DNA of 64,000 nt from Haplodiscus bocki (lineage: Eukaryota), in assembly GCA_965655095.1 (NCBI GenBank), contig OZ296648.1:118730001-118794000 (forward strand), given 5' to 3'. Positions 9,911 to 64,000 of the stretch are shown here, piece after piece. A program made the position numbers and the translations under genes. How positions within the stretch are numbered: the first letter of the stretch is position 1; the number at the start of each line of letters is the position of its first letter. The notes under the pieces are model-generated. The model searched no databases and was not told the DNA's origin. It worked only from the letters and a program-made list of their open reading frames with translations.

Positions 9911-10086
9911 GTAAGCATAACATAACAAAATCGGGACCTCTAAAACGAAGTGACCGGTCTATTTTGCACATATATAGTTTGAATCGAATATCCTTAGGTG
10001 TCCAAACGAAATGACAAAAACGTTCGGAAGCCGACGGTAGGGTTTTCAAAAGGGTCTCATTTGAATAAAAATTCTTTTGTTTTCAG
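9911..10086 (+). other. Spliceosomal GT-AG intron (176 nt, phase 0) in Maverick PolB
   Basis: AAG|GTAAGC donor and TTCTTTTGTTTTCAG|GTA acceptor; removal restores the frame and the conserved KFHLYDFHYK-VMKKTFDCSLLFSDTDS segment. Confidence 0.85.
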
Positions 10087-11129: not shown

Positions 11130-11690
11130 AAAGAAAGCCTCTGCAAAAGTGATAAAAAAAATAGCCCCTGCCAAAGAGCGCACGAAAAAAGCGCCTGAGA
11201 AGGCGCACGGAAAAAACTCTCGCGAAAAAGCGCCCGGAAAAAGCCCCGCGAAAGAACGCACGGAGAAAGCCCCTCGCAGAAGAGCACACGGAAAACAACC
11301 CCGCGATAAAGCGCACTGAAAAAACGACGGAAAAATCCCCCGCAAAAGAGTGCACAGAAAAAGCCGCCGCGAAAGATCGCACAGAGAAAGCCCCCGCGAA
11401 AGAGCGCATGGAAAAAGACTCTGCAGAAGAGCGCAAGGAAAAAGCCGCTTCGAAAGAGCGCACGTCGAAAGCCCCCGCGAAAGAGCGCTTGGAAAAAGCT
11501 CTGGTGAATTAGCGCACGGAAAAGCCGCTGCGAACGAGAGCACGCTAGAAGCCCTTGCAAAAGAGCGCACGGAAAAAGCCCTCGCGAAAGAGCGCACGGA
11601 AAAAGCTCCCGCGAAAGAGCACACGAAAAATGCACCCGCGAAATAGCGCACCAAAGAAACCCACGCTAAAGAGCGCATAGAAAAAGCTGT
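11130..11690 (+). repeat. 27-bp minisatellite (~20 copies), consensus GCGAAAGAGCGCACGGAAAAAGCCCCC
   Basis: Directly visible periodicity; one frame reads AKERTEKAP repeats; explains the cluster of overlapping ORFs on both strands. Confidence 0.92.
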
Positions 11691-12454: not shown

Positions 12455-13230
12455 CTAACTTCAAGTTTTTGCAGAGCTTTGTACAGTGCACAAGTTTAAT
12501 GAAGACCGTTTGTGGTCTCCCTGAACATTTAGAACGCAGTCCTTGATTCCTGATAACTTGAAAACATTTTTAGCCAGGGGCGGTCCTTCCGTACCAATTC
12601 CTTGGGGCGAAGGATTGATGAAGACTTTGATGTGTCCACATCTTCCTCTGATCCTGAACGGAGCAGTACTGATATTTTTGTATCCCCAGCTACCCCTCGC
12701 CAAGCGGAATTTTTTCAGAAAGGCTACAATAGTTGGACTGCTTACAGCCTGCGCTTGTGTCTTCCGGGTTTAATGACTCATGCCGATCAGTCCCTCCTCA
12801 GCTCTGACTGCCACAATGGCTTGGTATCCTACTCGCGGTCTTCCATTACCAGTCACGCTGCACTGCTAGTGTCTTCAGAATATCTTCGCGGTAACCTGCA
12901 AACAATGAAGAATCAATAGAACGGAAGTTCGTCATAAGGAGCGCCTCCATTCCATGCCGCTCTTATATTTGGGGTGGGGAGCAGCATTTTGTCGCAAGGT
13001 GCTTATGGTATATGAAACTTGTGTTTTTTTTTCAACCATCATCAGTAACCGTAACCTTGGGATCTCTATGGCTGCATAAAACTATACTTCAACATGGCTT
13101 CACAATCCCATTATTCTATATGCCCTCAAAATTAAACCTCTTATTAGTTGAAGGCAAAAGTTTAACTTACCCAGCATTCTTTTTTTCTGGAGATAACTGA
13201 AATCGATTCTTGATTTTTCTGCTTTCTGGA
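12455..13230 (-). pseudogene. Divergent ribosomal protein uS5 (RPS2)-like gene, copy 1, with a putative intron at 12896-13170
   Basis: Minus strand: YREDILKTLAVQ/VTGNGRPRVGYQAIVAVRAEEGLIGMSH*TRKTQAQAVSSPTIVAFLKKFRLARGSWGYKNISTAPFRIRGRCGHIKVFINPSPQGIGTEGPPLAKNVFKLSGIKDC aligns by eye with eukaryotic uS5 (DEVLKIMPVQK..RFKAFVAIGD..G..G...VRRGYWG...TVPCKVTGRCG....PAPRGTG......AGI.DC). G|GTAAGT donor at 13170 and TTGCAG acceptor at 12896. Confidence 0.75.
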
Positions 13231-16200
13231 ACTATTGGCAGTAGTTGTAGTGATGAGTAGTTGTATTTGAACTGCTTGATTTTTTGTCTGAGTCTTCCTC
13301 CACTGATAATCCATTGTTCTGAGTAGCTAGATTTGACGTTTAAATTATTTAAAAGTTAGGTTAGAAGTGCTGGCAATAGTGTGTACATATCGACTTCAAA
13401 GAAGAAGCGCATTCCAATAGAGTGAGATTAGCAGAAACGGTGATGGACGCTTGTTCTTCGCTTAGGTCGATTAGTGATCAAACTTGAAATGCCAGCAGTC
13501 TAGCCTTGGCTACATGTATATATTGTTCACGAGCCAAGATTCCACCGCGAAGTACGTTTTGGTTTAGGGATTCTTCCACAGAAAGGTTGAAATGATCTTA
13601 GGATTGACCGCGAGAAATCTTGTGAATCCCTATACTACTCGTACCACTTACTTAATTGAGCTAAAACTTAAACGATTTCCTTAAATTTTGCTAAGGTCGC
13701 CCGACTTGTCGCTTTTGAGCCTACCTTTTCCAATTGTTTGCTCAGAGTTCCACGAAACGAATACCAAACTATACTATCGCATTTTTAAGGAACAATTTGT
13801 AAATTGTCGTGTATTTAGTGTACAAAATAGCTGACTTTAGAACGTGTGCTCGTTTGGTTCAAGAATAATTGTTTGTTAGCATACAAGAATAAATGGCAAA
13901 CATTGCGAGGATTTTTTCTGAACTTTGAGAATCGTTGAAATTGGACCGCGTTCAAGTGTCTCAACGTAGTCCAAACGTTGCTATTCTCCTGATTTTCCCG
14001 AAGTTTTTGGATTTTTAAATTCTATTTCAACTTTTTAGCTGCGTTTTTGAACCAGTACAATACAGAAACCAAATTACTGGTGACTACCGTTTATTTCCGC
14101 TACAGTACTCCTTGTAACTTTTTCATTAGCCTAAAGGATGTATTTTGACGCCACAAGTTATGCTGAAAGTACCAAATATCGCATTCTTCCTTTATCCTCC
14201 GTTTGCCTTTCACTTACTTTTCGACAAGTTCGGCAAATCAATAGAGAACGGAAGCAAAAATGTAGCGCGCTACAGCAGGAAGTTCCAATTTTGTTGAGTT
14301 TTGGTTTTCGGTGCGTTTGTTCGATATAGATATTTTGTTCGACTTTTGCCGTAGTTCCGGTCTCCCGCCTTCTTTTTCTGCTTTTTGGCTATACTTACAA
14401 TAAAAGCATTATGAGAGGACATATTTTGCACCTTTCCAGAAAAGCTTCAACTTTTTCGCTATGAATGGTCGATTTTATTGGTTTTTGATAATAAATTTAG
14501 CAGGTTTTGCAATTTTTCCTTTTGCCTTCCCAATTAGGTACGCCTCAACCGAAATCAAATAGAAATTGCTTATTTTGAGAAGTTGCTGGCACTTAAAATT
14601 GTATCCGATAGTGTGAAATCGCAGTTGCTACTGCTCTAAGCAAATTTGTTAAATTCAGTTTTTACACCACATTTGTTTCCGACCAAACAGAGCATCTTCG
14701 CTCACCAGGGTGCTGTTGTTTTGTGTGCTGTTGAACGAAAAACTAAAACCTTTATATGTACGAGATGCACATTTTTCATAAATACATTTTTTTTGCTGTT
14801 TTTGAAAGAAAATTGGAAATGAAAGTCTGTCAAATTTCAACTGACGAATGAGTATCAATTCATTTGGTTAGTTTAGGAAAATTCGCAATGTTCTGACAAG
14901 CCTTTTTCCGGTAATGATCGATCGTGCTGCTACGAGTTCTCGAAATACTGAAGGAATTTGAGTGGCTAGCTTTGTGTAGGCCCGCTTCACCTCTTTGTGA
15001 GCGAATGAACCCGAGTATATCAGTATGTACTTCTTAACGTATTTATCAAACCCTCACTTTCGGATAAACTTACTAAACTTACAAATTTTTTCATGCTTTG
15101 TTCGGCTGCTCACTTCCACATCCCTCACTCAATTGTGCTTCTAAAAATCCTACCTGATTGTTAAAAGTTGAATTATTCCAATTGAGTGGAAGAATTCCCC
15201 AATGAAGGTCATTTTCACTAGCAAAAATTGCTTTACTTGCTCGCTTTACTTGTTTTGTTGGGTAACTATAAAGGGGATAAACCAGTTAGCGGGAATTTAA
15301 AATTCAATAGCGTCTTGTTGGTTCGGGGTTTCGCCCAATTTACATTACTAGACCGGGGTTGGGGCCTCGTGCCGAGACCTTTAGTGACACATACAAAACT
15401 GTAGTCAGTCAGCATGATCTCTTGAACCTCTTGATTCGGCTAAATTTTGCATGTGACCCTGAATCGATGACACAAGCAACTCAGCCTGCTGGCATTTTGG
15501 CTAAAGATTCGTTCTTTCATTGAGAATTTTGAATTATTGTACCTGATTTTATTATTTTTTCGAAAAAACTTTGATTTACAGTCAAAAATCTCTGGAATGA
15601 ATTGTTTTTGACGGTCGGTCATGAAGTGAGCTGGAAACCTGTGTTCCGTGGCCGTCCCGTTGCAAGAAATTTGATTGTCTCATTTTATGAAAAAGATATC
15701 TCATTTCGACTTTTTCGAAAATTTTCACCGGAGAAGTTTCGGCAATAAGATTACAAAAGCTCAATTATCTCTTGAATTTTCCGTCCTAAGTTTAATTGAG
15801 CGTTAAGAAGTGAAGCACATAGTCTTTTCGGCTGCTTTTTGTCAGAAAAATTTTGACGATTTTTTTTCAGTGATAAGTTTGATCACTTTTGCCAAAATGT
15901 TGGGGCAATTAACTTTTCCAATTAAAAATTTTCCAAGTATTTTTTGAAGGCAACACAAGTTGTTTTCGGGAATTCATTTTTCAGCTTTGGTTTTTTCCCG
16001 AAATCGCGTCCGTCAAAAGCCTAAAGAAGTAGGTCCCACTCGCTCTTCAGCTCAATTGAAGCCATCTGTAATTTTTTTCCTTTTTTTCGTGCTCTTTCTC
16101 AATTTTTTCAGTCTAATTCTGGAGTATGCTATACATTTCATTTGCATTCTTGTTCGGTTTTATTTCAACGCAATAAAAGGTTCTGGTGCCATTTGTATGT

Positions 16201-19200: not shown

Positions 19201-21137
19201 GCTACACGCTCAGTAGCCCGCTGTTTACCTACCCGAAGGTTTTTCAATCAGAACCTTAGAATCGTTTAAAGAACATTTCAGTTAACACAGAATTTTGAAA
19301 AGAAAACAGATAAAAGTCAATTTTCATGTAAGTTTGCCGTACGAGTTCACCCAAAAAAAAGGATCATCTTCTATCAAACATTGATTGTGTTCAAAGGTCC
19401 CCTAAGAATCAATCAATGAGTAAATTTTTACTCTGAAGGCCACTGCAAGCATTGGTCTTGATGTAAACACAAGAATAGCATGAATTCATAAATTTCTGCC
19501 AGAAGGCCGTCGGTTAGTTGAACAAAAGACTCTTGACATCCCAATGGGACCGTTGGTCGTCCTACATTCTTTCAACGGACGGCTCAAACCAGTCCAAGTA
19601 TCTGCAGGCCTTCAACGTTGAAAATAATGGCAGATAAAGCGAATTTTCCCACTTCTTTGAAAATTTCCACCGAAACTCCGCCGAAAGAGTTGAATAATTC
19701 CAGCAAAATATCACATGAACTAAGTCTTATTGCTCCCTTGATTAGATAGTAATTGTTAATCACCCAAGCCATATGAGCCTTGAAAACAGCGATAAAGTAC
19801 CATTTGCACGCTAAAAATACGGCATTTTCAACTTTTTTGGCTGTTTTTTGGTGGCCAAAAATTTTCGACAGCTGAAAACTTCGTCAACGAAAACTTCTTT
19901 CGCCTAAAGTTACGCAAAACAATTCTAATGACACAGTAAGTAGCAAGTATTGGGGCGCCGAAGTTGATAATCGAAGTGGGTGAATGAGGGAAATAGGCTT
20001 TTGCTCAACGAAATTGGAACTTTTTTTGATTTAGTAGGGTATCAAATTTTATTGATTCTTCATCGACTCCATTTTTGAAAGCGACCATAGTGTGCATATG
20101 CTACTTGTGCTAATAAAATTTTACGTGTTGCGCTCAATCTTTTCCCCTTTTTCACATTGTTTTCGCTAATGACTGGGCGGAAAAATTGCCGACGCTGAAA
20201 ATTTGGGGCCATGTCAAATGTGACGTTGCTGTTCAGGTTTTCAAAAGACACTGGCCAATACGCTCTAAGATAACTCAGGAGGCGCATAGGGCTGTCACAA
20301 ATCCAGGACAGGAAGAATTAAAGTCATAGGCGCAAAGTGATTTGCGCACGGCTCGCGAGGAGGTGAAGTCACGCCAGAAATGAACTCTGCTCATGTTTGA
20401 AGTTTTAAGCGAGAGAGCAGTAGCGAACAAGCCGTTAGAAAGTTTTGGAAACTTTTCCGCCAAAGTAACAGTGGAAAAATGGCGAGTCTGGTCTGACACA
20501 CTCTATTGTGTTAATTTCTTTTGAGAATCAGTGCACTAGTGTTTCGAACTAACAAAGACAATTGCAGGCCCTAATGAAGATAAAATTGCCAACGAACGTG
20601 TTCTCCGACTTTTCTGCTGAAAGTTTTTAGCCAATACTCCGCAGAAAAAACAACGTCTCTTTCGATAAACCATATTGTCTATTTGTCTCCAGCGAATCGC
20701 TTAACCAATTGGTCAATTCAACCGAGTTTTTTTTCGATATTTGTTTGGCCTTTTTTCGATGTTTTCTCTAATTTTTCAATAAAACTTTCCGGCAGACTTT
20801 GCGAATATTTTTCACTAATTGGTGATAAATACAATAGGTTTTGCAACGATTCCAGTAATATACACACCCACCGTTTTTATATTGTAGTGATGTAATGAAA
20901 ATTCAACGCTTTATCCGAAAATTTTTCGGCGTTTTCATTTTGTTTCATTTTCGTTAACACTTCGAAGCGAGTATTTTTCGGACGCCGAAAAATTTAGATA
21001 TGGTCAATCACGGCCATAATCTTGGATTTTCGAGAGAAATAGAACGCGCCGACCAATACGTTCAGAGATATAACGCTTTTCAGTCAAGAAACGCAGAGGT
21101 TTGCCACAAATCAAGGACTGAAGAATTAAAAAACGTT

Positions 21138-21500
21138 GGCGCTAAGGTGCTAAGCGCAAGACTAACCAAGGCCTTTAACCTTTTTACATCACTGACCACA
21201 TGCCTATGCATTGTCAGAGGGAATGTGGCAAAATCCGGAGAGATTCGGCACAGAACAAACGAAAGACATTCGGCACAGAACAAACAGAAAAGATAACAGC
21301 GGCGTTCTAACATAATTTTCCTTTTTTTGAAAAAATTAGCCAAAAAAGAACGTTCTCTGAAAAGCCAGCGAAAACCAGTCGCTGTTTAGCAAATGCGGCT
21401 TCAGAGCAGTTGGGTACCAGTAATTGGCAAATATGGCTGTAGGTAACGTTATACGAATCTGGAAATATTAACTTCTTAACAAAGATCCGTGTTTTCCATA
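21138..21500 (+). repeat. Diverged copy of the interspersed repeat also at 24460-24807 (-) and 62907-63250 (+)
   Basis: GCGCTAAGGTGC..AGCGCAAG...TACATCACTGACCACATGC...GCAAAATCCGGAGAGATT...AAAAGCCAGC shared with 62907 onward. Confidence 0.7.
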
Positions 21501-22221
21501 TTTTCTGTCAGAAATTTATATCAAAACATTTGTGTTGGAACCCGAAGTCGTATGAACTCTGATGGGGCGCTGAAAGTTGTTTAGGGGGAGCACACCAGGG
21601 GAAATTTTATCCATGTGATGGGAGAAGTTATAAATTATCGCGAAAGACAAGCAATTGAAAGAAAATGCTTCGCATCTGAAGAGTACCTTGGGCAAACCTC
21701 ATTGCTTTGACCAAGCGTACTCTCCCAGCATCTCAGTGGGATTCACGCAACCCAGTTTAATTTTTTTTGTTTTTACAACGGGATAAATTGTCCTTAGAAA
21801 AGACTTCAGTCTTGAGTAAAATTATTTGACAATTTTCGGCTATTATTTTTTGAGAAAAGTTCCTTCGTAGTGAAAACTTGCATCATAAAGCCACTACTGT
21901 ACACCTCGCTTAATCTATTCCTCAGTGCAAGTGATATGCAGATGAACATCTTAATTTGACACGCTGAACGCGGTGGAATCTGCAAGTATATGTTCAAAAA
22001 ATACACGCGGGGAGTACATTAATTTACTTTCATATTAATATGGGCAGAAATTTACAATAGCCGAAGTGCATTGCTGCAGGGGCTATGAAAAAATGATGGA
22101 TGGAAAAATTTTTCAATAAATTAATTATGGCTAGTGTTTCTGAAATAGAATGTTTCTCAGTAAGAAATACAATTATTCTTTTTGGGGTTTTCCAAATTAT
22201 GGATATGATTTCCGTTTTCAG

Positions 22222-22300: not shown

Positions 22301-25300
22301 GTGAGTTGAGTTTGAACGTATCAATATTCACGGCTTCTATCTGCAAGTTTTCTGTTTTCGATGTCTCACTGAATGATGTTTTAGAAACGGCGTTTTGAGA
22401 CAGTCTATTTCTACATGCGAAGTCTGGCAGCCCAGGAAGATTTCAAAGGTAATTATTATTGTATCATCACTGCATTGTCTGTAATGGATAAATTTGAGCG
22501 GTAAAACATATTGGCGAAATAATTCGCAAAGCGCTTTTATTATTATGCGATTTTGACCATTTTCCAAAAAAGATCACTTTACTTAGCATTGCCACATACT
22601 TCAAGGTCTATCGTTGGACATTGAAATATACTGGGTGTACGACTGATTATTGAAGTTTTACTATGGAACCAAAAAAGGGGCAGAATTTCGGTATCAAGTT
22701 AAATTTTTATGACTTCAAAATAAAGCAATTGAAACCACTGAATTGATCCTTTGTTGTAGAAATAGTAACAAGCCAATTTTTTATTACAAATTCTGACTGG
22801 AAGGAAGGATGTGAATTGGAACCGGCTTATCTCCAGTTTTTTATCCTGTCCAAAACTTGCATTTCTTGACGTCATCAGATAGTCGTGTTCTTGTGAAAAC
22901 AGTCGAAAATGAACATTTTGAGACATTTGACAGGTATTTGTTTACTTTAACGTTCTAAAATTTACTATTATGTTGTCACCTTGTTCTGAAAAAGTGAACA
23001 ACAGCGTCCTAAAAGATCATGTTTGACTGGGAATATTTTGAATACCGACAATGTGGCAGCCCTAGTTGAACTTGCATGAAAATTTTGCCTGTTGTATTAA
23101 TGCATGCTGGAATATTTTTTTCACAAAGCATAAAAAATTCAGGGATCTTGTGTGGAGAAATCGTACAAAATTTCCATGCAATATGCAGAATTTGCATGCA
23201 ACATATTAACAAAACATATCACTTCATTTTTTAGGCGAGCGGAGCGAAGCCTGTTAGCACAAGGACACGTCAAAATGATTTCGTTTTTTTTTCCCGTCCG
23301 TGACATCCCTCCGCGTTTCATCTCTTTACATCTTATTTTCTCGGCACCTTTTGGTCAGATTTATCCGATTTTTGTCTTAACACTACGATGGTTTCTCGAT
23401 TTAGCTTATTGCAAATTTTCGGTCGGCAGATTTTTTTCGGCGTGTTTTTAGCGATAAAAATTTCATTTTTCGGATTTTTTAGAGGGCAGAAGAGATATTT
23501 TTGAGTCTTGTCTGTACAGGAAACTTGGAAATGCTGAAGTTTTTGCATTAATCGATGAAGCACCATTCAGTTGAGACCAATTTTTTTCGGCCAGTTTTCG
23601 TCAAAAAACCGGAATTTTTTCGAAACAGATTTGACATTGCCCACTACGTTTCGTAACTTTGACGCTCATTTTCTACGAACGCATTTGTAGGATCCGTTTG
23701 CTTATTGCCAAGCTGTATTGGCAACTTCGTAATTGACCGGGTTCGAAATTTTTGGTGTACGAAACTTCTTCGCGAGCGAGTTTCTGGCGAAAGCAATTGA
23801 AAACCCAGGTTTTTTCAGAGGGCAAGTTATACTTTGTCGAACTTCCTTGGCCTATTATCCCATATATGGCTTCCCAATGCTGGTTAGGAGATGGAACATT
23901 ATGCGTAAGTTGCATTTAATTTCTAACCGAAAGTTTTCTTATTTTTCCACAAGATTTTGACCGAATTTTTCCGGAAGAAAATTGGTTTTTCAAGTTACTT
24001 CCTGCATTATCTCAAGTTTTGTGCGTTCAGCATGCCTCAAAGTTATGCCTATCACCTGAATTGAGGAATAGAATAAGCAATGTGTACAACAGTGGGTTTT
24101 GATGCAAGTTTGGGCTCCGAAAGTTTTCAAGAAATAAGATTCCTTCAAGACTTGTCGACTCTAGAGAGTTTTTATCCTGCTGTACAAACAATAAAAGTAT
24201 ACAGGGCTTCGTGATGCTCATTGCATTGACTGGAGAAGCAGTGGAGAGCTTGTCAGGGTACGCTCAGTCGTAGATAGGTGGTCTGGACAAGGTACTCTAG
24301 ATGTTGAACATTTAAAAAAAATTCCCTTTGCGATGATTTACTGCGACTCTCATCACCTGGAAAAATGTCTCGAGTGTCTCCTAATAACCCTCTGCATCTG
24401 CTCACTGCTTTTGTAACCTTTGGGCTGCGCGAAATTTTTTGGTCGAGCTTTCTGAGAACACCTATCGGGAAAACACGGCTTTTTGGATAGATTTTTATTT
24501 CCAGATTCGTATTTGTTCACTTAACGCCCTAGTTGTCAACGTCTGGAACCTTGCTGCTCTGAGATGGCTTTTGCCAAACAGCGGCTGGCTTTTGCTGACT
24601 TTGAGATGACAAAATATTCTGTTCCAGCTAAATTCTTTTAGAAGTTAGGTTAGTTATCTCAAACTGCTCTTATCTCGATTGGTTGGTGTCTGTCTAATCT
24701 CTCCGGATTTTGCTACATGCTCTATGGCATTCCATAGGCATGTGGCCAGCGGTGTAATCAAGAGTTTGAGTACCTTCACGAGCCTCGCGCTATGAGCACC
24801 TTAGCGCCTATGTTTTCAATACTCTACTTCACATCATCAAAGTAGCACTAGCTATTTGTGACCTCTCCACAAACTGTCAGAAGTAACAAAAACCATCGAA
24901 AGATTGTAATTATGGTCTATGATTACGGTCTCAATTTGGTAATACAAGTTTTGAGCCTGCAACATTTTATTCTCTTATTTTTTTCTGATAGTTTTGTTTT
25001 TCTGTCAAAACTTCGCTCAGAGATTGCTAAAATGTCCTATTTTGACCCAGAGAAACATATATCGCATATGAAACCTTTCAGTGGCACAATAGGAAATCCG
25101 TGAAATGAATAAATGATCACAATGAAAAAATTTTGATTGCACTTAATATTTAGAATTGTGGTTGAAATTTTTCTCATGCTACATGGAAACTTCTGTAGAA
25201 ATTCAAATTTGTCTGCTGCATTCAGATTTTGCATGTTGCACGGAAAAATTTTTGTACAAGTTCACTTGCAGCAGTGAAATTTTCATGCATAAAAAATTTT

Positions 25301-37300: not shown

Positions 37301-40300
37301 TTAATTGAAAACCAGTTTTTACTCGGCGCTTTAAAATTAGGTGAAGTGCCGGATTATTACAGTGGCTAGTTTCCAGGACTTCAGAAATTTAAATTCTCAA
37401 AGTACTTATGGTGTAACTCGGTTTTTTAAACGCTTTTTCGTTTTCATGGTGTTAGTAGGTTTTTGTTTTTAACGCTTCTTCGTACGACATTTTGGCGACT
37501 TCGTCCCAAATAAGGAACTTCGTGCGACATTTGAAAAATTTTAAGCTACTTGGAAGTACAGGAGGGAGCATACGGATCATCATAGTAGTGGTGACAGCGG
37601 GCAAATCAGAAAAATTTGAATTTTTTCTTCTTGTTCCCTCGTCAGGATACATATAAAAGTTTAAACCCCGGGAGCTTCTTAATTCTTTTATCCCAATTCG
37701 CTGAATACGAATTAAGAGGGACGCTATGGCTGTCCCTGAAATTTTCCGCAGACCTATCCACCAAGGGTGGCTATGATTCAACATTTTTTTCACGGTTCAT
37801 GCGACGAAAATGAAAAATTAAAGTCTTGCACCTGCAAAAGAAGAGTGCTCTTTAACAATGGCCATATGGTACTTTTAATAGAATTAAACCGTACAGAAAA
37901 TGTGGATTTTGCGTTCTTCTATAACAAAAATTTTGGACCGTTGGCTCGAAATTCCATGAAACCCCTTACATGTGATAAAACTTTTTTGCAAAGGCAAATA
38001 CCAATAATTGCTCAAATAATGACTTCCTCAGGCAAAGAATAGTGTAACAAAGAATCCCTCTACTATTTTTCCGGCACTGTGATGCTACCCGGAAGATCCA
38101 TGTAGGAGCAAAGATGGTCTGCTCCGTACTTTTCGGCCGAATATTTTAGCTTATAATAGGCACATCCAAGGGGTTCTTATTTTGGTCTTTCGTCAGAATC
38201 GTTGTTCTGGAGTACTGTTCATGCATTCGTCCGAAACCTTCGTTCAATTTTTAGCACTTAGGAGGTTATTCAGAGTCTCGTTGTTGGTCTGTTCATTGTT
38301 CTCTATCCATCAAATATGTTGACATGTGCACCAAAAATGGAACCCAATTTTTCTTGCGTCTTTCTAAATCATTTTTCATGGAAGATGCTCCGTTTTTCGT
38401 GGAAAGGGTTTTCGATGACTATTAATCAGAAGTCGGTGTTGACATGTGCACCAAAAATGGAACCCAATTTTTCTTGCGTCTTTCTAAATCTTTGTTCATG
38501 GAAGATGCTCCGTTTTTCGTGAAAAGGGTTTTCGATGACTATTAATCAGAAGTCGGTTATTGCACATTAGTAGTGGCGCTTTTAACGCGGTCTACCTACA
38601 CCCAAATCCCGGATTCAAAATTCTTGGGATTCAACCGTTGACTGTTCCAAATAAGGTGAATTCATACATCAAAGCAGCCGCGGAGCGGAATTATTTAGGT
38701 ACAACGATGAACGATAATCGGTCGAGTAAAATAATTAGACTTTCAATTTCATTTCTTGCACTTTCTGTGCTTTTGTCTCAACTTAACATTTGTCACGTCA
38801 GCATGGGCCCGACCACGCCCGAAGAGGTGAATGAGTTGAAATACCATGGCAATAATTGTTCAGAACATTAAGACGGCTATCGTTTGGACGGAGGAACATC
38901 CTTTTAATCTGCTGCTGCTGAAGACCATCTATTTATCTGCTCAGATGTTTACGGCGGGATGAGATGTGAGGAATAAATATGATGGAATTAACATTTGTCA
39001 GGGAAGAATGACACATATCAGCCGGCTACCAATGCATGGAAGATTACAAGTTAAATGTTCAATCGATGGTTTACGTAACCTGCAAATGAGAGCATTGTGT
39101 TGCCGAAAAGTACACATCGAAAATCGTGCTATCAAATTTAGAAATCATGTTCTTGGATTAAGTAGACTAATACAAAAGAAGGGCTTGTTCGAAATTCTCG
39201 AAGACAAAATCAAATATCCTAGTTCCATATGGGTTCTCAGAAGTCGAAGGTGTACCGATTGACCAAATTTCTTCAAGAATCAAGGTGACTACTGGCTCAT
39301 CATCATGGACTGGTAATAACAAGAGTTCAATGTACCATTGATCATCATTAAAAAACACCCAGTATGTTCCAGTCAATTTGTTTAGCCCTGCGATACCGAA
39401 TACAAGATTATGACGAATACTGGACCCTAGAAAGTTGAAGCCTCTTCTAATCATTAAGAACCAGAACCATTTGTCTGAGATTGCAAAGTATCACAATTTA
39501 AAACAAAGACAAGAATCAGTTTGTTTTTGTTTTAACAACGAAAGTCTGAAAATTTTCATCCTACAATTTGTGGTACTTTTGTTTTCATGAAAGTTCTCTT
39601 CATTTTACGCACAACTTCGTGACATCCGATGAAGGCTTCTAATACCCTTCTGGTTGGCGATATTTTTTCATTGGAGGATAAATTAGTAACGTATGAAACA
39701 GACGAAGACCATTTACGCTTCATGATTGGTCTATGTCCGTTCGTTGACATTGATGTTTACCGAGAACAGGTTCCTCTAAAATTGAAATTGATAGTTGTTG
39801 GTTATTCCACAAAAGCAAAGTATACCGGTTAGGTTTTCTCCCAATAACAAGAATTTCTTCTCTAGGTTATTGAGAGCAAATTGTCTGCGGTCACTCGCGA
39901 AAATATAACCCATTTTTTGCTCTGAAATTTTTAGACTTTTCATTCAAGTTGCTTCAGGGATCTAAAAAGTTGTCCAGAAGTTGTCATTGACTTCGAAGGG
40001 TTTAGACAAAAAAATTACCCCGTCATAATCAGAGAAATTTCAATTTGTGCGCCAAACTTTCAGGACAATTCTCTGTCGACCTCCATCCGATGCACAACTT
40101 ACTCCCCAACATGAGAGGAAGGTTACGCGACACCTGCATGGTCTGGATTCGAACGCTGGAGCTCATGACTTTTCTTTCCAGCTCATATTTTTCACAAGTT
40201 TGAACGTTCGATTCCCAAGTGATGTCTTTTATGTTAAAGGACAGAAAAAATGTGATTCGCTACGGAGATAATCTTTCCAAATGATCGACCTACCGACAGT

Positions 40301-43300
40301 TTGCTATCCCAAAGATACAGATTTTTCTCAATATGTAGACACGATCTGCTTCAACCAGTCATTCCGAACAATACTCTGATCACTGCTCGACGAAAAAGGC
40401 TTGGTTTTCTTAGAATTGCTAAATCGACCAGATACAGCAAAATATCCAAGTCAAACGAAAATTCAAAATCTACAGCTACCTCTGTCAGGAAACATGTTTC
40501 TGCACCTATCCGCAAACACTTCCACCGTTGGCGACGGGACCGACCAATAACGCGCACACAAATATTTGCCTCGTTGAAGAGGAAGTGGTAGAATTTGCCA
40601 GTCATAATGTTTTCAACAAAGCCATCATCCAGTTGCGGCCCGAAGAATTCAGTTGCCTGAGAGAAAGTATCAACTCAGCCAACACTCTATTAAACTACAC
40701 TTCTAACTACATCAAAAATCATGTTCAATAACCGACTACAAGTTGTAATCCAGAAGCACAACATTCCGACAACAGGAATTTTGCTGATCAGACCCAACTC
40801 GATAGAATCGACGACTCGCGATTACCCAAACAGATTTCAAAAGATCTAGCAGGTCGACAAGTTGTTTTGAAAATAATCTATATCCCAGCCAGCCTCTTTG
40901 TTTAAAAGGAAAGAAGAATATTGCATTGAAATTAAATCTAGTAATGACTCTACTACCTATATTTTTTTACTTTATGCCAACAGTAAAGTTGAAAACCTTT
41001 TGTGAAATTACATTGTTGTTGTTGTCTGTGTTTGTTGTATAACTTTTCTGATATGAATTCTTGCTTTCCGAAATCGTTTTACCTTGAAATGGTGGAGCAT
41101 ACAGTTGACTCAGTAGACGGTTTACAAATTGAGGACATTGTTTTTCACAATAGTCAAAGTGAAAGAATGTCGTGGAAGTTGTGCATTTCCATCCCATCAC
41201 TAGCCTCAGAAGTTTTGTTCTTCATCCGAGCAATTCTTATTCTCAAGAAAGTATTTACGACTTTGCTAAAAAATGACACTAGATTCACCATCAATTGACG
41301 AAATAGCAGTTGGATTTTCTTTTTTATTCGGAGCAGTTGGCTATGTTTTGCCGAACCCCCAATTTGGAACAGAATAATTTTCACAAATGATCGTCTGTTC
41401 ATGTCCATGGTTGGCCCAAGTCGATCACGAAAAACCCGAATCATTTTTCTGATGCTTGCTTCACCGACAATATTTTATTCAGCCATTGAAAAAACGTATT
41501 ACTTTTAGAAGGATTATCAGCCTTTGTTCCAACAGCTGGCGGAAAAATTAAATACTGAATATTTGTCTTGTTTAGACTTTGAAATGATTGAAAACTGCTA
41601 GTTTGTCTGCTGGTATTCGACGACTTCTGCGAAGAAATTATCAGGGGGAAGAATTTGCTAACATTGCAACAGCGGGAAGGCATAAGAAAATTCATTGTAT
41701 CTTTGTCAAACATATTTTATTTCATCAAAGCAACTGGTGGCGCTCTTTCGACCTGAATACAACACACATTGTTTTGTTCAAGTCTGTTCGGTATATCCAA
41801 CAACTTGACGTGTTTGGAAGACAAATGAATCAAATAGAGCTTTTGCGAAATTGCTGCAAAAAGTCAACATCCGAACCTTACGGTTACCTTTTGATTGACT
41901 TTAATCCCCGAACTAGTGAATCTTTATGCTTATCTTCGAATACAGTTGGACCCTCACCCTCAATTTTCGATTTACCTTCGTCACTAGCCAAATAAACGCC
42001 CTTTACAATTGAACGCGAAAAAGTTGCATATGCTGAGGCGTTGGTAAGAAGGCATCAGGCGAAGGACTATCAAAAATTTTTGAATCAATGAGATGCTGGC
42101 ACAATTAATTTGCTTGGCGAATGTGCTCTAAATATATATAATGGTAGCATTCCCTTCGACGTGAATGAGTTATCAGCGTGCCTCGCGGTAATGAGTTATT
42201 CTGAATTTATTCGCATACGACCTTGATGAGATTTGGTCAATTGATTTAGCGTATGTTGACAAATTCGCTAATTTTAACAACCAAGTCAAGTATTTGTCAT
42301 TAGCGGTAGATGTTCTACCGCGTTACCTGAGAGTTTTCCCAATGCGTACAAAATCATCTCAAGAGAATGCAAAGACTTGCAAAAAATTGTTGGAAAAAAA
42401 ATACCCCAAAAAGTTTGGTCGGAAGAAGGTACAGATTTCAAAGTGGCTTTCCAGCAACTCTGAGAAAAAAGAAATACATACATAGACAACCGAGAGTGAA
42501 ACCAAGTCAGCATTTGCAGAGAGAAACATTCTGTCGCTCCAAAATATTTTCCAAGTTACGAGTACCTGGAGCATAAGTGGACTTACCACTGCATCAACAA
42601 GTTGCAGTCATTTGTTGGTACGGTCAATTCCCGCACCAATCGAGTAACACAATTGGATCCGAACAAAGTGACAAGGAAACACGTGCCGCATTTACGAGCA
42701 TTGGCAGTGGAAAATTCCAAAAATTGTCAAACAACCACTTTTTTAAGTCAGCGATGAAGTACGCATCGCAAAAGAAGATTCACTATTCGAGAAAGGTTAC
42801 AAGCAAAACTTTACAACTGAATTTTTTCAATCAAAGCGGTTCCAACTTCGAACCCGCCAGCATATAATTTGCAAGACAATACTGGAGGAAAAATCCAAGG
42901 AAATTTTTGTGAACTTGAGCTGGTTAATACAAATGGACGAGTTTGACATTTATCTGGAATCAACAGGTTTTTTGAATCTTTATCCCAACAACACACATGG
43001 CGATTTTTCACAATCTGCTAGCACACCCAATTCAACTCGAAGGTGATTGAGGTGTGGCTTTGATTGAAGTCCTTTCCCCAACCAGCAATAAAAACAATAT
43101 ATCAACCGTTGATTACACTGCAAACGTCCCTCAGAAAAAGGTTTCTGAAGCAAATTCCGGTGGATTTCAAGTATCTCGCGAAATTGGGAAAATATTGCAA
43201 CTTTGCCTTCTGGTGTCTACTGAAACGTGAACGCTTTGTTGATTTGTTGAAAATATTGCAAGAGGAAACCCGTTTCTCTAAACTTTTCGACTCGTTCACT

Positions 43301-46300
43301 CAGTAACAAAGAGTATGTAGCTCTGGTGTTAAATGATGACTTTGGAGTCAGCTTCAATGACTGCAGTTTTTTTGATGTCTTATAATTTAATGGTGTACCC
43401 GACAAGCATCGAAAAGGAGCCTATTTTTTGGAGTAATCATAGCGAATACGGTAAACAGACTCAACCAATCACAAATGATTAACCTCCAGATCTGACAGCG
43501 GGGACAGCATGTTTGTTGCAAACACCAACCTCATTGAACAAGAACATGTTGCGGGTGTGAACTCGCCATCACTGAGAATCATTGATACCCACAGAATACT
43601 GTCGAATGGTAAACTAGAAGTGACCTCTTCGGTTTCCATGTTCTTCATTCAGACACTGATTCGCTGCCATATGAAATGAGAGTTGCTGCCACTACATTGA
43701 TTCTTCGCCTATATTTTGACATTTCAAACTACCCAGAAAACCTTTATCTATACAATAGTGACAATAAAATGGTGACGCTGAATTTGGACTCGTCCCGATA
43801 GAATTTATTGGACTGCAGGCTAAACTCTTTTCGATACTGACCCATGAAAAGCAAATGATTTCCATTAAAAAAATTAGTTTGCGCAAAAAAATTTATTACA
43901 TGAAAAATACAAGGAAGTAACATTAACTGGTCAATCGTTCCGTACTATAAACACCAAAATCAGATCAAAGAAACACCAGTCGCACACAATACGTTACAAC
44001 AAGCTGTCACTCCCTACTTTGATGATGACGTTTTATTTTGATTGATGGTATTACTTGTCTTCCCTTCGGACATCATGGATATCGAGATGCTAACATCCAC
44101 CGTGAAATACTTGCTGATAGTGACTGCGGAGGAGATGGTTTACCATACAGCCCCACTTGGATTGAAATGAGGCAACCTTCCACCTGATCAATTAACAACT
44201 CCGAACTCTAATGCTGAAGAAGCAACCAGATTTTCGGACGAGAATTTGGATGAAATTATAGGTTAGACTTCACCGGACCCCTGATTTACTCAAAAAAGTT
44301 ACTGAGACTCAGTTGAATGATGAATTTTCACACTTTCATGCGGAAAGTGAAATAGAATCACCCCACTCGAGGAACACTTTAATCGATGATGAAGTTCAAG
44401 ATACTGATTGGGAAGCAGCAAGTGTCGTTCATCTTGGTTCGAGTGAGAGCGAAGACATACCCATCTACAGTGAAGATGATAAAAACTGGAGGACTTGGAA
44501 CGATATTTAGACTATGGCCATTCGAATGCCGATAAAGAAAGTTCAAACGAGAGATCGAGAATTGATTCGTCGACTACTGACAGCGAACTCAACAAGATTG
44601 TCCATGCTTGTGAGCTGTTATAATACTCTTAAGTTCATTTTTATTGTTCTTGAGCTGGTTCAAGTGGTTTAGTTGTTTTGTGAAAATATAACATTGGATG
44701 GAACTTCATTACCTGCTCCTCAGCCGATGAAAAGATTTTCAGATTTCGTCGTTTCTAGAGAAAGTTTGATCCTTTTACCAAGTTATGTTTGCCAACGGCG
44801 TGACTAAACAATCGAAGACTCCAAAGATGTAGGCATATACTAGTTACATTCGATCAATCTTTCCATACATAGATGCCTACAGTAAGCCAAAACAAGCTAA
44901 AACTAAAAATATCTTCTTATACTAGGTCTGATGATCACTCGTTATCAATATTGATGCCTCGAGTAAGCCAAAACAACCTAAGAGCCCAGATATGCCTGCC
45001 TATACTATGTACATTGCATAAATAGTTCAATATTTTGATGCCCATCATGAGCCAAAACAACCTAAATTTCCAAGTATGTATGCCTATGTTTGGTATATTG
45101 CCTCAATCTTTCACTATTTAGATGCCTATAGTGAGCCAAAACAATCTCACAGTGCAAAAGTATATGACTGTTCTAGGTATAATCCATCAATCGCTTACAA
45201 TATAGATGCCTATTGTAAGCCAAAACAACCTAAGAGCCCAAATATGTTTGCCTATCCTAGGTATATTGCGTCAATGTTTCAAAACATAGATGCCTATAAA
45301 AAGCCGAAACAACCTAAGAGTTCAAATCTGTTCGCCTATACTGTGTATTATCCGTGAATCTTTCAATATATAGGCACCTATAGTAGTCCAAATCAACCTA
45401 AGTGTCCAAATATGTATGCCTATATTAGGTATATTCCATCAATGTTTCACTATATGAATGCCTACAGTGGACTAAAACTATCCAAAAGTCCAAATAATCC
45501 TTGCTTTATAAAAATTTTTGTGCCAATCTTTCATTACATGAATGTCTACTTCTGAAAAATATTACAAGAGTTCAAATATTTCACCCCTGAAAAAGTAACT
45601 CCCTTGAATCTTTACAAATCACTGAACAAAATTCCACTGTACCGCGTTTTCTTTTAATAAGTTCATTGCTAGCTGGATGAAGGAGCGCGAGATCGGCGCG
45701 AGAAGCATGCCAGTTTTTTGCAACAGCTTTTGTTTTTTTTTCTCGGTGGCTCTTGTTTTGTACTGATGCCGTTGTTTTCGTGAGAAAAGCATCATTCGGG
45801 AACCTACTAAGACACTTGTCAGAGAAATATTTTGAGCAACTAGGAATACAATTGAACCTGTCAGGGGACTAAGAACACCAAAACCGCGACGACACCGCAA
45901 AGACGATCAAACAAACACACATTCTAATGTAAAGTTCCAGTTGCAAAGGCAATTTTGCAAGAGTTTCAGTTGCAAACTATTGATAAATACGAATTAGCTG
46001 AAACATACCAAAAGTCTCTCAACGCCTTTGATGGCAGCAAAGAGTGGAAAAGCTAAACTGAATGAATAGTCACTCATTGTTGATGGTGTTAGCGAGACAC
46101 AATCTTGAACTCCTGCTGATTTCAACACAACTTTGGTCAAGCACGAAGTTTGAAGACCTGTACGTCGCGCGGCGGGACATAGCTTGATTGTGAGGTCATC
46201 GTGACAACCATGCATTTCCTGTTCTAAAGTTTTGTTGGACCCTGGTATTACATCAAAACAGGCCACGTTAATTTCGATAATGTTCGTTTCTGCACTTGCG

Positions 46301-49300
46301 GTAGCCTTTGCAATGCCATTTGTTCCGTTTTATCAGTTGTGGAACCGAGACCAATTTTTCCTCTGCAGTTGCCCACAGAAGCAACAGCTCTATAGCGGCG
46401 CCGTTTACCTGACTTTTTTTTCTGTTTCCAGACAGATCATTTTAACTATCTCAGTATTCAAAATGTCCTCAGATTTTGGGGATTTTCGACGCTGGAGTTG
46501 GGGTCATAAGAGATTCATATTTCAGAAAGCCAACTCTACTTTGATCTCTCCTGCATTGACTTTTCAAAGAATCCATCGACATACACATTTTTTGTTCTTC
46601 TTAAAACGTTTTCAGTCCTTCGTTGAAGCAAACCGGGAAAAGGGCAATTCAGCGCCACGCGTAAGGCCTGAGACCTCAATGGGCGTATCATCAAGGTTTG
46701 AGAGTCAGCTATCTCATCGGTAATTGGTTTGCCCATAAAAGTATTTGCAAGCGCCATGAAAGTTTTCAGGAGTGTTGAAGGAATTCAACATTGACCATTT
46801 AAATTTGCAGTTGGTGGCCTATATATACGATATCGAATACAAATTTTGATTTTGAAATGCTTAACAGACATTTTTCAAGATTTCAATGATGAAAGAATCA
46901 GCGTTCGACGATAGTTTTTAGTTTGAACTTCAAAACTGAAAATTCGGCGGGGGAGAATTTGCTCAATCATGGATGTGTTCGCTAACCTCGGAAGTTGCTT
47001 TGGATTTTGAAGATCTACTTTGCTGTAGCAGAAAGATTAGGCATTAGATGGAGTTATTTGAATTCATGTCAAATAGATCATTCAGATCCGACTGAATTGG
47101 CACCAAGATACTCTATTATTGATTGATGGATGTCAAACCGCCTATCGTTTGAATAACGTATCTATTCGACTTATAGCCGCGACCGAATTGTTGGAGAAGC
47201 ATACTTCATTTGAAAAAGATCAAAGCAGCTTACAAAATGAAGTAGTAACGGAGAAAAATTAGTTCACTCGAAAAGGTTTTTTTGCCGATTCTTCGTGAAT
47301 TCCGACAGAATCATTACATCGCTTTTGAAGCAACTATTAATTATCCAAACCTGGTAAAGGGGTAATTCAACTCTTACTTTATTTTCCGTGAAGGGAAAAG
47401 TTGGATGTTGTTTTCCCGCAAATAAAAGGAAAACCCCTTCGAACTGAGGACGCAAAAATAACCCGAAAAATATTACGAGCTGCGGCTATAAAACAAATAA
47501 AGACGTTAATACTAAAAACAATTGTAATCATATGATAAAATGCATGCGTTCTGTTACGAAAATGGATAATATCTATCCGAAATTCTCATGGTTAACTGTT
47601 AAACTTTTTTCGATCGTTCTTCACTAGACGATTTGCAGGATGGAGAGAATTTTTAAAAATGATTGAAAAGTAACTTTTTAGAACAATTGTTCAATTTCTT
47701 GCTTTCAGAAAAGAAACTTAAAAGGCAGATGGCGCGTTTGTCAATTAATTTTTCTCTAACAAATTGAGGGAAGATTCTTGAATAGATATTTTTATCGTTT
47801 AGTTCTACGCCGAATATGCTGCGAAGATGACTGAAGATAGCGCCAAAATCTGTATTTTAAGCATGGTTTTTTCTTCACCCACTACTCATATCTTGATGTA
47901 TGAGATAAAAGCTTATTGTTTTGCTTTTTCATTAAGTCAGACTGTAGAAAAGCTCTGGCACCTTTTCAGTACACCTCTTCTTTTTTCTTTTGAGTGAAGG
48001 AATTGTAGCAAGAGGCAAAAGATTTCAAGCGAGAGAGCCTGACTAAAATTCGGTAGTTCTTGATTGAGTTCGATTTTAAAAAATGAAATAGTTTAAAAAA
48101 TAGTTCTTGGAAAGAAACGGATACCGGTAGATAGTTTAATTGAAATGGAATTAAGTGATCGCTAGTTTCGAAGCCAATGGCATGACAATTGATCGACTTC
48201 TTGCTTCCCTAAAAGTCAATCCGCTACGTTTCAAGAAACAGAAAAGTAATCATTTCCAAAATATTTTATACTTGAATGTACCTCGTAGTCGGAGTAGCTC
48301 GGTAGTCGAATGGTTGAATACTCCGACTTAGCCGAAAGCGTACGTACGCACTGGATCAAATCCAGGGAAAACGAAAAATTTCATCAAAATTTGAATCGGG
48401 GATTTGGGCGTAGGTAGACCACGTTAATAGCGCCACTCCTAATATTCTTCAACCAAAAATTGAAAGTTTTTATCAATAACAGGGTGTCTTCTGATAGCGT
48501 TATAATGTTAAGCGATCTCAAGTTGAGTATCAAAAATTGGTTTTCGTTCGTTTTGGTATAATCAGTACTTTGTAGTTGTTTTGATAGCTGTCACAGGTAG
48601 TGCAATGTGTGTCGCGAGTGTCTGTGAAGCACAGATTCGCTTCTGTGTCATACTTGTCATGAGCATATGTCTTGGAATCCGGATAATACGTCTTTTTTAT
48701 ACCTTATGACTGCAAATTTCTGCTATTCCGGCAGTTTTGCTACAGAACAAAGTTTTTTCATGCCGTGCTCTCAATTGACGTCGTTGGTACAATTGAGAAA
48801 TGAAATCAATTTGTTTTACTTCGACTAGTACATCTATGATTATACTTGCGCAATCAAGTAATAAATCACAGGCTTCTAATCTTTTTTCTCCCGATCATTC
48901 ACCACTTGCACAATTTACTAGATTTCGACCAAAGAGAGGGGGAGTGTCATGCGCTCGAAATTGCGTCCTTCCGTGTCGCACTCGCATACTCTACTGACTG
49001 CCGTTGCCTCTTGGGAATCAGTATTATCACTTGAAATACCAGGGAATGAATTTTTGTGGCGTTTCTTACTTGTATGTAAATGTAGATTATTTAACCGAGT
49101 GCCTTTGGACTTGTTGTCTTTGTTATCTTGGCCGCTTCAAAACTCTTTATTTTGAATGGACTTATTCACTAGTATTCCGTTGGACGAAGTGTTGCGAAGC
49201 GCAGCTTCGCCTCTATGTAAATTTTTTCCTTTCTTCGTTGAAACTCTTCTTGCGCACTAAGTAATGGGAGAATTCAGTCCATCTACAACTCTTTGAACAC

Positions 49301-62394: not shown

Positions 62395-62906
62395 CTGAAG
62401 GGGGACTCAGCGTTTTTAAAGCTCAAAAACCCGAAAAACAGTATCGCTTAGAAATTTGTTGAAATTATTATGTATTTTTGTTTCATCATCGGGCCGACAT
62501 TGCGAAATTGCGACTTGCATTTTTGAAATTTGCAGCACTTGAAGTAACCATAAACTAACCCTGTTTTGAATTTCTCACACTAATTACGTCGGTCTTGATC
62601 CCCGAAGCCACGTAATTGCGTTTTCATGAAAAATGCATTCATTTTTTGATCAAAAATTGCAGCATTCAAGTATTAAGGTCAGGTTTCGTTTTCAAGTGAC
62701 CCCAAAGTGTTGAACTTCGGCAAAGTTGGTTTCTCGCAAGAATGGAAAACTCGCAGAAAGGTTATGGGAAATATTCAAAGGCACAAAAATGTCCCGACAC
62801 TTTTCTCTGCATCTTTTATGATTACCAAGATTTTCGAAAAGATCCAAAATTATAACGACAATCATAACTTATCGAATATTTGTCCAGTGTGAAAACAAAA
62901 ACAAAA

Positions 62907-64000
62907 GCGCTCAGGTGCATAGCGCAAGGCTCGTGAAGGTACTCAAACTCTTGATTACATCGCTGACCACATGCTTATGGAATGCCATAGAGCATGTAGC
63001 AAAATCCGGAGAGATTAGACAGACACCAACCAATCGAGATAAGAGCAGTTTGAGATAACTAACCTAACTTCTAAAAGAATTTAGCTGGAACAGAATATTT
63101 TGTCATCTCAAAGTCAGCAAAAGCCAGCCGCTGTTTGGCAAAAGCCATCTCAGAGCAGCAAGGTTCCAGACGTTGACAACTAGGGCGTTAAGTGAACAAA
63201 TACGAATCTGGAAATAAAAATCTATCCAAAAAGCCGTGTTTTCCCGATAGGTGTTCTCAGAAAGCTCGACCAAAAAATTTCGCGCAGCCCAAAGGTTACA
63301 AAAGCAGTGAGCAGATGCAGAGGGTTATTAGGAGACACTCGAGACATTTTTCCAGGTGATGAGAGTCGCAGTAAATCATCGCAAAGGGAATTTTTTTTAA
63401 ATGTTCAACATCTAGAGTACCTTGTCCAGACCACCTATCTACGACTGAGCGTACCCTGACAAGCTCTCCACTGCTTCTCCAGTCAATGCAATGAGCATCA
63501 CGAAGCCCTGTATACTTTTATTGTTTGTACAGCAGGATAAAAACTCTCTAGAGTCGACAAGTCTTGAAGGAATCTTATTTCTTGAAAACTTTCGGAGCCC
63601 AAACTTGCATCAAAACCCACTGTTGTACACATTGCTTATTCTATTCCTCAATTCAGGTGATAGGCATAACTTTGAGGCATGCTGAACGCACAAAACTTGA
63701 GATAATGCAGGAAGTAACTTGAAAAACCAATTTTCTTCCGGAAAAATTCGGTCAAAATCTTGTGGAAAAATGAGAAAACTTTCGGTTAGAAATTAAATGC
63801 AACTTACGCATAATGTTCCATCTCCTAACCAGCATTGGGAAGCCATATATGGGATAATAGGCCAAGGAAATTCGACAAAGTATAACTTGCCCTCTGAAAA
63901 AACCTGGGTTTTCAATTGCTTTCGCCGGAAACTCGCTCGCGAAGAAGTTTCGTACACCAAAATTTTCGAACCCGGTCAATTACGAAGTTGCCAATACAGC
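62907..64000 (+). repeat. Near-identical inverted duplicate of 23712-24807 (runs off the window end)
   Basis: Base-by-base reverse-complement match in the segments checked. Confidence 0.97.

Follow-up and report, generated by a model that had tools for sequence, protein, structure and literature searches.

The stretch of DNA analysed here (64,000 nucleotides of Haplodiscus bocki, contig OZ296648.1, positions 118,730,001 to 118,794,000 of the forward strand; 'the window' in the following) carries two decayed elements of the Maverick, or Polinton, type, here called element 1 and element 2. Both contain the same arrangement, i.e. a broken gene encoding PolB, a protein-primed DNA polymerase (pPolB), a tandem array and, converging on PolB from the opposite strand, a relic related to the ribosomal protein uS5 (copy 1 in element 1, copy 2 in element 2). 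An earlier note on this DNA had pointed out this order and had suggested that a Maverick lineage captured a ribosomal protein gene long ago; the order is indeed common to both elements, with only a C-terminal remnant of PolB left in element 2. Copy 2 is the subject of this study. It is a dead pseudogene of an element-encoded paralogue of uS5 (RPS2), and we regard both its identity as a uS5 paralogue and the element-borne nature of the gene as highly probable.

Copy 2 and the deleted Maverick around it

Copy 2 occupies positions 45994–46576 of the minus strand, stop codon included. Its uS5-like peptides, among them the strings quoted in the earlier note, are spread over several minus-strand frames (three-frame translation of 45900–46900). 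Both domains of uS5 are recognizable: the Pfam family Ribosomal_S5 (N domain, PF00333) is matched by window:46251-46436:- with 28.5 bits (cut-off 27.1, E 1.6e-6) and Ribosomal_S5_C (PF03719) by window:45997-46329:- with 22.4 bits (cut-off 21.5, E 8.7e-5), and in a sequence search of the PDB with the N- and C-domain pieces of copy 2, uS5 chains were the only matches. The extent of the relic and the number of its breaks were taken from a frameshift-tolerant alignment to five intact relatives (see below), in which copy 2, at about 46024–46576, corresponds to residues 1–186 of these proteins with 40–45% identity. When its C-terminal tail and the stop codon are included, the relic comprises ~194 codons and is thus full length relative to the family, with damage consisting of three to four frameshifts and zero in-frame stops. 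The conserved start methionine of the family aligns at 46576; the open reading frame (ORF) at 46577–46757 is unrelated to the uS5-like gene and is without family assignment, and the ~250 codons (45994–46757) originally assigned to the relic therefore overran it by about 180 nucleotides at the 5' end. Alignment scores of copy 2 are 260–346 against the Maverick-borne family and 104–141 against canonical uS5, and its N-terminal piece aligns to, and thus retains, a segment specific to this family. By these scores copy 2 clearly groups as a family member, closer to the other members than to canonical uS5 over its full length.

The element in which copy 2 is located, element 2, is an internally deleted Maverick/Polinton derivative of 9.87 kb (38569–48440). 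Its borders are defined by three features. First, the terminal motif AGTAGTGGCGC is present at 38569 on the plus strand, with a one-mismatch version at 48440 on the minus strand, and the two ends form a 68-nucleotide inverted repeat with the AGTAGT-type motif and 84% complementarity (left terminal inverted repeat (TIR), 38569–38622, plus strand; right TIR, 48387–48440, minus strand, ~1.86 kb beyond the uS5-like start). Second, a paralogous locus in the window's own assembly (L012) is 70–78% identical to the window between 44063 and 48440, and the similarity ends precisely at the latter position. Third, the gene order of element 2 is collinear with that of an element in a related locus, L005. 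The hexamers flanking element 2 match at four of six positions only, i.e. a clear target-site duplication has not been left. That copy 2 lies inside TIRs, as the earlier note had it, is correct with respect to these Maverick termini at 38569 and 48440, but not with respect to a 1.1-kb inverted repeat (23712/62898) also considered as the TIRs of element 2, which is ruled out by the three border features given above. The arms of this repeat (23712–24816 and 62898–64000, the latter reaching the window end) are 99% complementary and 38 kb apart; a 66%-similar copy is found at 21130–21940, and all of these belong to a separate repeat family. The inverted repeat may be a young inverted duplication or may represent the ends of another large element. 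A recent tandem duplication with a 120-nucleotide unit (38317–38557, 97–98% identical) stops roughly a dozen bases short of element 2's left end.

The genes of the elements in the window were identified via relatives rather than by direct Pfam matches, since Pfam searches with ~50 stop-free ORF pieces from across the window yielded hardly any match; the fragments of the PolB gene, the capsid genes and others are too short or too diverged. From left to right, element 2 contains small ORFs collinear with L005 (38845–41365) and then, all on the plus strand, a relic of a packaging ATPase of the Pox_A32 type (41404–42076; two frameshifts, two stops), which is 60% identical to a 229-aa L005 protein that itself scores 22.3 bits with Pfam Pox_A32, below the cut-off of 22.8; a relic of an rve integrase core (42201–42724; three frameshifts, one stop), with a weak rve match on the window piece and a match to the L005 integrase, which scores 48.5 bits with rve; a relic of a 284/285-aa gene that follows the integrase (42936–43637; about six frameshifts, four stops), a putative minor capsid gene labelled as such solely from the gene order of vertebrate Mavericks (PMC8097293); and the C-terminal remnant of pPolB (43640–44169; ~190 residues matched, four frameshifts). 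The rve integrase typical of Mavericks/Polintons is thus present in element 2 as a relic. Between the PolB remnant and the convergent uS5-like relic lies a tandem array with an 84-nucleotide period and ~7.9 copies (44806–45468). The three genes that precede PolB and more than 1,100 PolB codons are gone, the protease gene and the capsid genes (double jelly-roll major capsid, penton) having been deleted, so that element 2 is a deleted, non-autonomous derivative, the remaining genes of which are also broken.

A uS5-like family carried by Mavericks

When 1.84 billion representative proteins were searched exhaustively with HMMER, the C-domain piece of copy 2 (111 aa) gave seven matches at E values up to 1e-3, whereas a word-indexed search with this piece gave none, owing to its length window and word filter. 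Five of the seven are true relatives (P0121–P0125; best match E 4e-15, 58% identity, far from anything expected by chance), and the other two (P0126 and P0127) were dropped as bacterial-type repeat proteins. A profile search added P0128–P0131 and a cluster look-up P0162–P0171, which brings the family to ~19 distinct sequences, all of them from the ENA assemblies ERZ25074608 and ERZ26859043; a contig of the latter matches the window with 98.7% identity. When IMG/VR and the JGI metagenome contigs were scanned with P0130 and with a four-member alignment, zero relatives were obtained. Rfam and tRNA scans likewise gave no match, and a host exon in flanking DNA matched only distant PDB entries. In the profile search, family members score 221–297 bits, followed by a sharp fall to canonical archaeal and eukaryotic uS5 with at most 95 bits, which clearly points to a distinct family separate from canonical uS5.

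The fold of the family was assessed with the intact protein P0130, not with the broken copy 2. Residues 38–185 of P0130 match eukaryotic uS5 in the PDB with E values of 4e-18 to 1e-14; PF00333 is present in all intact relatives, and relatives also carry PF03719. An AlphaFold2 model of P0130 (built on alignment A4) has a predicted local distance difference test score (pLDDT) of ~90 for residues 38–187 and below 50 for residues 1–37, and the top Foldseek matches of this model are 40S uS5 structures (E 2e-15, template modelling score 0.72, 146 columns, 34% identity), on which it superposes with a root-mean-square deviation of 1.7 Å. Identity of the family to any canonical uS5 is 30–35%. Fourteen columns are nearly invariant across the family and canonical uS5, including three glycines in a loop of the N domain and a Pro-Ala in the C domain, and the core is basic, with an isoelectric point (pI) of 9.3–10.0, in all members except a cluster around P0124. 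The family profile aligns to residues 101–244 of the 293-residue mammalian chain, and the N-terminal extension of eukaryotic uS5, which is RG-rich and chaperone-binding, as well as the C-terminal tail are absent from the family. By alignment and model, the family has thus kept only the universal two-domain core of uS5, i.e. an N domain that resembles a double-stranded RNA-binding domain (dsRBD) and contains the glycine-rich loop, together with the C domain. In front of this core, the first 38 residues are acidic. This N-terminal segment of ~37 residues is family-specific, unrelated to the eukaryotic extension and apparently disordered in the model. It is nevertheless strongly conserved: representatives of four subfamilies all have the same residue at 15 of P0130's first 26 positions.

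Where these genes are located was compared at 18 loci fetched from the related assembly ERZ25074608 (L003–L011 and L013–L021, with L008 and L009 being one locus). Each of the 18 contains an intact, uS5-like ORF of 185–198 aa at a distance of 1.3–2.2 kb from a convergent PolB gene, and its position between the element terminus and PolB is fixed throughout. PolB is intact (1435–1471 aa) at 12 loci, split or shortened at five and cut by the contig end at one. The intact uS5-like genes (185–198 codons) of these young elements are without introns. Four of the loci (L005, L006, L007 and L008) encode P0130 identically, and the homology between them begins at an AGTAGT terminus ~1,475 bp upstream of the P0130 ATG, with unrelated flanks outside. 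An identical protein and a homology that extends only inward from the terminus, with unrelated flanks, place the uS5-like gene inside the element, and the earlier assignment of this gene to the lineage of the element, not to the host, is borne out by these four independent insertions and by its constant position at the 18 loci. As the first gene next to one terminus, convergent with pPolB across a tandem array, the uS5-like gene belongs to a terminal accessory module.

The tandem array itself is found between the PolB stop and the uS5-like stop in every element, with a varying unit: 27 nucleotides in element 1 and in the related element L001, 83–84 nucleotides in element 2 and in L006–L008, where the 83-nucleotide array has the same position as that of element 2 (L006:10930-12480). 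The 27-nucleotide array of L001 (L001:12300-21113) spans at least 9 kb and fills the rest of the fetched flank beyond PolB. Intact PolB proteins (L003:8333-12640, L004:12055-16452) begin with C2H2-like zinc-finger segments and end with a long acidic tail; shorter PolB homologues carry PF03175, and the full-length proteins of 1435–1468 aa are without a significant Pfam match. After PolB, the relatives contain a 142-aa gene, the product of which weakly matches Peptidase_C5 (13.7 bits), a gene of 417–473 aa, for which Pfam gave no match with the 442/473-aa versions, a 123-aa gene, a 284-aa gene and the rve integrase; L001 also matches DJR-like_dom with 27.3 bits (cut-off 27). L005 contains two neighbouring, identically oriented Mavericks from a single lineage (L005:1-9500 and L005:8518-20564), the start of one being no more than ~2 kb away from the terminus on the uS5 side of the next one, which could reflect an insertion preference or tandem integration.

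Across pairwise amino-acid identities of 36–74%, the full-length members of the family have the same start and a similar end, and their reading frames stay open. Nei–Gojobori estimates of nonsynonymous (dN) and synonymous (dS) divergence on locus pairs gave dN 0.177 and dS 1.13 for L005 and L010, i.e. a ratio of 0.16, and ratios of 0.13 for L003 and L005 and of 0.11 for L003 and L010, with dS near saturation; near-identical young copies differ by 0–3 of 570 nucleotides, which is too few for such an estimate. By these values, the uS5-like gene is under purifying selection in the relatives. The divergence of the same genes is strikingly out of step with that of their neighbours. Between L003 and L006, PolB is 97% identical in amino acids (dS 0.12) and the uS5-like protein 61% (proportion of synonymous differences (pS) 0.72); at the DNA level, identity is 89% from the array through PolB and 64% over the uS5-like gene. 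Between L004 and L011, PolB is 94% and the uS5-like protein 42% identical, with 94% DNA identity from just before PolB onward and undetectable similarity upstream. The terminal module with the uS5-like gene thus has a much older history than the replication module of the very same elements. Since synonymous sites are saturated while the neighbouring PolB is 94–97% identical, this divergence would reflect old, exchanged cassettes and not only fast protein evolution, and since DNA identity shifts abruptly at the array, the array may be the point of recombination. Old allelic cassettes swapped by recombination at or near the tandem array are the simplest reading of this pattern. The earlier description of the gene as maintained and rapidly evolving therefore has to be divided: maintenance agrees with the open frames and the low dN/dS ratios of the intact relatives but not with copy 2, a dead gene in a deleted, non-autonomous element, and rapid evolution of the protein is only half of the picture, given synonymous sites that are also saturated next to a nearly identical PolB.

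What the intact protein may do

What would make a Maverick keep a truncated uS5? In cells, uS5 lines the mRNA entry channel of the ribosome and influences decoding accuracy. Our preferred explanation starts from a single capture of a cytosolic uS5 gene from a host, probably an animal, the old alleles of which would since have been passed between elements as cassettes through recombination in or close to the tandem array. Most likely, the intact protein would still bind the uS5 site of 18S rRNA in the 40S or pre-40S particle, near the mRNA entry channel, where it would either replace host uS5 in some of the subunits or interfere with the assembly of host uS5; translation or the supply of ribosomes would thereby be biased toward the element, and a partner would dock onto a short motif provided by the new N-terminal segment. 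To this explanation as a whole we assign a probability of roughly 0.6, a value that blends the well-founded part, i.e. identity and element-borne nature, with the ribosome-site mechanism, which we put forward tentatively and at less than even odds. Binding at the ribosomal site is suggested by the retention of both domains and of the universal signature columns, by the basic core and by the canonical predicted geometry. A more pointed version, in which a minimal core uS5 enters 40S or pre-40S particles and makes element-serving ribosomes, with the cassette alleles being traded in an arms race with the host, we consider possible, though slightly more doubtful again.

Several observations weigh against this explanation. 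Counterparts of residues 1–100 and 245–293 of human uS5 are missing from the family. The N-terminal extension of eukaryotic uS5 binds a chaperone and is methylated (PMC10216425), and with the chaperone-binding and methylated extensions lost, normal delivery to pre-ribosomes may fail (PMC10216425). The loop between the two domains is unlike that of canonical uS5. In the P0124 cluster (P0124 and P0166–P0171) the pI is near neutral (6.3–6.4), the C-termini are variable or truncated and there are several substitutions; this subfamily is either decaying or has changed its function. An animal origin is suggested by the ranking of matches to the family profile, in which animal 40S uS5 come first with 92–95 bits, followed by fungi, plants and protists with 84–89 bits, but this is a small score difference and not a phylogeny. 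Finally, the family has been seen in two assemblies only, and the dN/dS ratios come from few comparisons, with dS saturated in most pairs.

The same properties of the protein also allow for activities away from the ribosome. With its dsRBD-like S5 fold in the N domain and its basic core, the intact protein could bind double-stranded RNA (dsRNA) or structured RNA, for example RNA that arises where the uS5-like and PolB genes are transcribed toward each other across the array, and thereby blunt a silencing of the element that is triggered by small RNAs or dsRNA. The convergent genes and the array, present at every locus, could indeed give rise to antisense overlap, and a cassette-like allelic diversity would suit an antagonistic interaction with the host. 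What speaks against RNA binding of this kind is that the C domain, although no module for binding dsRNA, is equally conserved and that the signature columns of universal uS5 are retained; moreover, we know of no role of the S5 N domain as a general dsRNA binder outside the ribosome. We therefore consider such an off-ribosome activity unlikely, if worth keeping in view.

Still less probable, in our estimate, is a decoy that would, by titration, deprive host uS5 of PDCD2/PDCD2L, PRMT3, ZNF277 or a factor of ribosome quality control. This idea draws on the unusually many conserved extra-ribosomal partners of uS5 and on the prediction that PDCD2 wraps also around the S5 dsRBD (PMC10216425), and the conserved, disordered N-terminal segment with its aromatic and glycine residues could be a docking motif. 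It is weakened by the absence from the family of precisely that N-terminal extension which carries the PDCD2/Tsr4-binding, arginine-methylated region with its FXXXFG motif for the chaperone and its sites of RG methylation (PMC10216425). The spacing of the aromatic residues in the family-specific segment differs from that of the FXXXFG motif, and the resemblance is thus only a lead.

That the uS5-like genes are neutral passengers, i.e. processed RPS2 pseudogenes or hitch-hiking host DNA without a function for the element, could be read from the broken copies 1 and 2, from degraded uS5-like fragments at L012, L022 and L023 and from a copy 1 that is not clearly nearer to the family than to canonical uS5, but is largely refuted for the family by intact reading frames with conserved length, start and end across 36–74% identity, dN/dS ratios of 0.11–0.16, a common pattern of truncation combined with a family-specific N-terminal segment, the fixed position inside the terminus at 18 loci and the clear separation from canonical uS5.

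Returning to the ribosome-site explanation, comparison with known systems helps to define what is unusual here. With cytosolic uS5 (RPS2, Rps2 in yeast) the family shares the S5 N and S5_C domains, the fold, the universal signature columns and the basic core; it differs in consisting of the core only, in its acidic N-terminal segment of ~37 residues and in being encoded by intron-less, multi-copy genes inside a mobile element. Among viruses, it is mainly phages from which ribosomal protein genes are known. Ribosomal proteins encoded by phages (bS21, bL12 and others) have ratios of nonsynonymous to synonymous polymorphism (pN/pS) of ~0.1 and are mostly peripheral, exchangeable proteins (Mizuno et al. 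2019, PMC6375957); that survey makes no mention of uS5. The parallel to them is a host-derived ribosomal gene in a virus-like genome under purifying selection (dN/dS 0.11–0.16 in the family), copy 2 itself being dead. In contrast to these proteins of bacterial viruses (PMC6375957), we are dealing here with a core, channel-lining protein of the small subunit in a eukaryotic virus-like transposon.

Vertebrate Mavericks have an AGTAGT end motif and the gene order integrase, minor capsid, PW, major capsid, protease (Barreat and Katzourakis, PMC8097293), and adintoviruses carry accessory genes for venom-like, membrane-active and similar proteins (PMC8502044). The termini with AGTAGT and the gene order from integrase to protease in the elements described here resemble these (PMC8097293), and the general pattern of a lineage-specific, host-derived gene between a terminus and the core modules is shared (PMC8097293; PMC8502044). 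A difference lies in PolB, which in our elements comes after the capsid module, is encoded on the same strand as that module and is convergent with the accessory gene, a tandem array separating the two. Neither the vertebrate Maverick paper nor the adintovirus paper mentions ribosomal proteins (PMC8097293; PMC8502044), and a literature search of open-access papers and preprints found no paper linking polintons, Mavericks or adintoviruses with ribosomal protein S5 or Ribosomal_S5, in agreement with the earlier note, whose author knew of no description of a Maverick-borne uS5.

If the elements do make ribosomes that serve them, this would be, for eukaryotes, the first known case of a core ribosomal protein encoded by a virus, and its study could reveal whether eukaryotic mobile elements tamper with the ribosome. 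A truncated uS5 core that is under selection in active Mavericks would also amount to a natural experiment on which portions of uS5 are enough for a function that selection can act on, and comparative work can draw on ~19 different natural sequences of the family and on 18 or more loci. Furthermore, a cassette-like accessory module of Mavericks with an allelic depth far above that of the replication genes bears on recombination between elements and on the conflict between element and host.

Element 1 and copy 1

Element 1 extends from the window start onward, and its right end is undefined. A AGTAGTGGC-like site at 21898 was considered as this end and rejected, because similarity to the 1.1-kb repeat family runs across both of its sides. 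The integrase and the following gene of element 1 lie at about 6–1535, and further relics belong to the capsid module. The broken pPolB gene (6388–10853, plus strand) is collinear with the intact PolB of 1435–1468 aa at L003 and L004, the homologues of which carry PF03175. A tandem array with a 27-nucleotide unit (11158–11687) is located between this gene and copy 1, which is found at 12469–12890 on the minus strand, with one stop, zero to one frameshift and an S5_C match of 32.3 bits.

The S5 domains are the only recognizable part of copy 1. The strong difference between the two copies asserted in the earlier note is real: in tblastn searches copies 1 and 2 fail to find each other, being too diverged, and the scores of copy 1, 85–130 against the family and 115–156 against canonical uS5, place it no closer to the family. 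One capture behind both copies is likely on the basis of synteny, though not proven; the shared synteny favours copy 1 as a deep branch of one ancient capture, the alternative being that copy 1 may stem from an independent capture at the same place. An RGG-rich N-terminus ascribed to copy 1 could not be confirmed, because the Arg-Gly-Gly peptides occur only in the minus-strand translation of the 27-nucleotide array (11042–11690), and the array lies 3' of copy 1. A possible family-like start is seen several hundred bases upstream of copy 1 (region 12469–13330, minus strand), which would imply an insertion or an intron. Within the PolB gene of element 1, a recent tandem duplication with a 223-nucleotide unit (8318–8763) is 96% identical.

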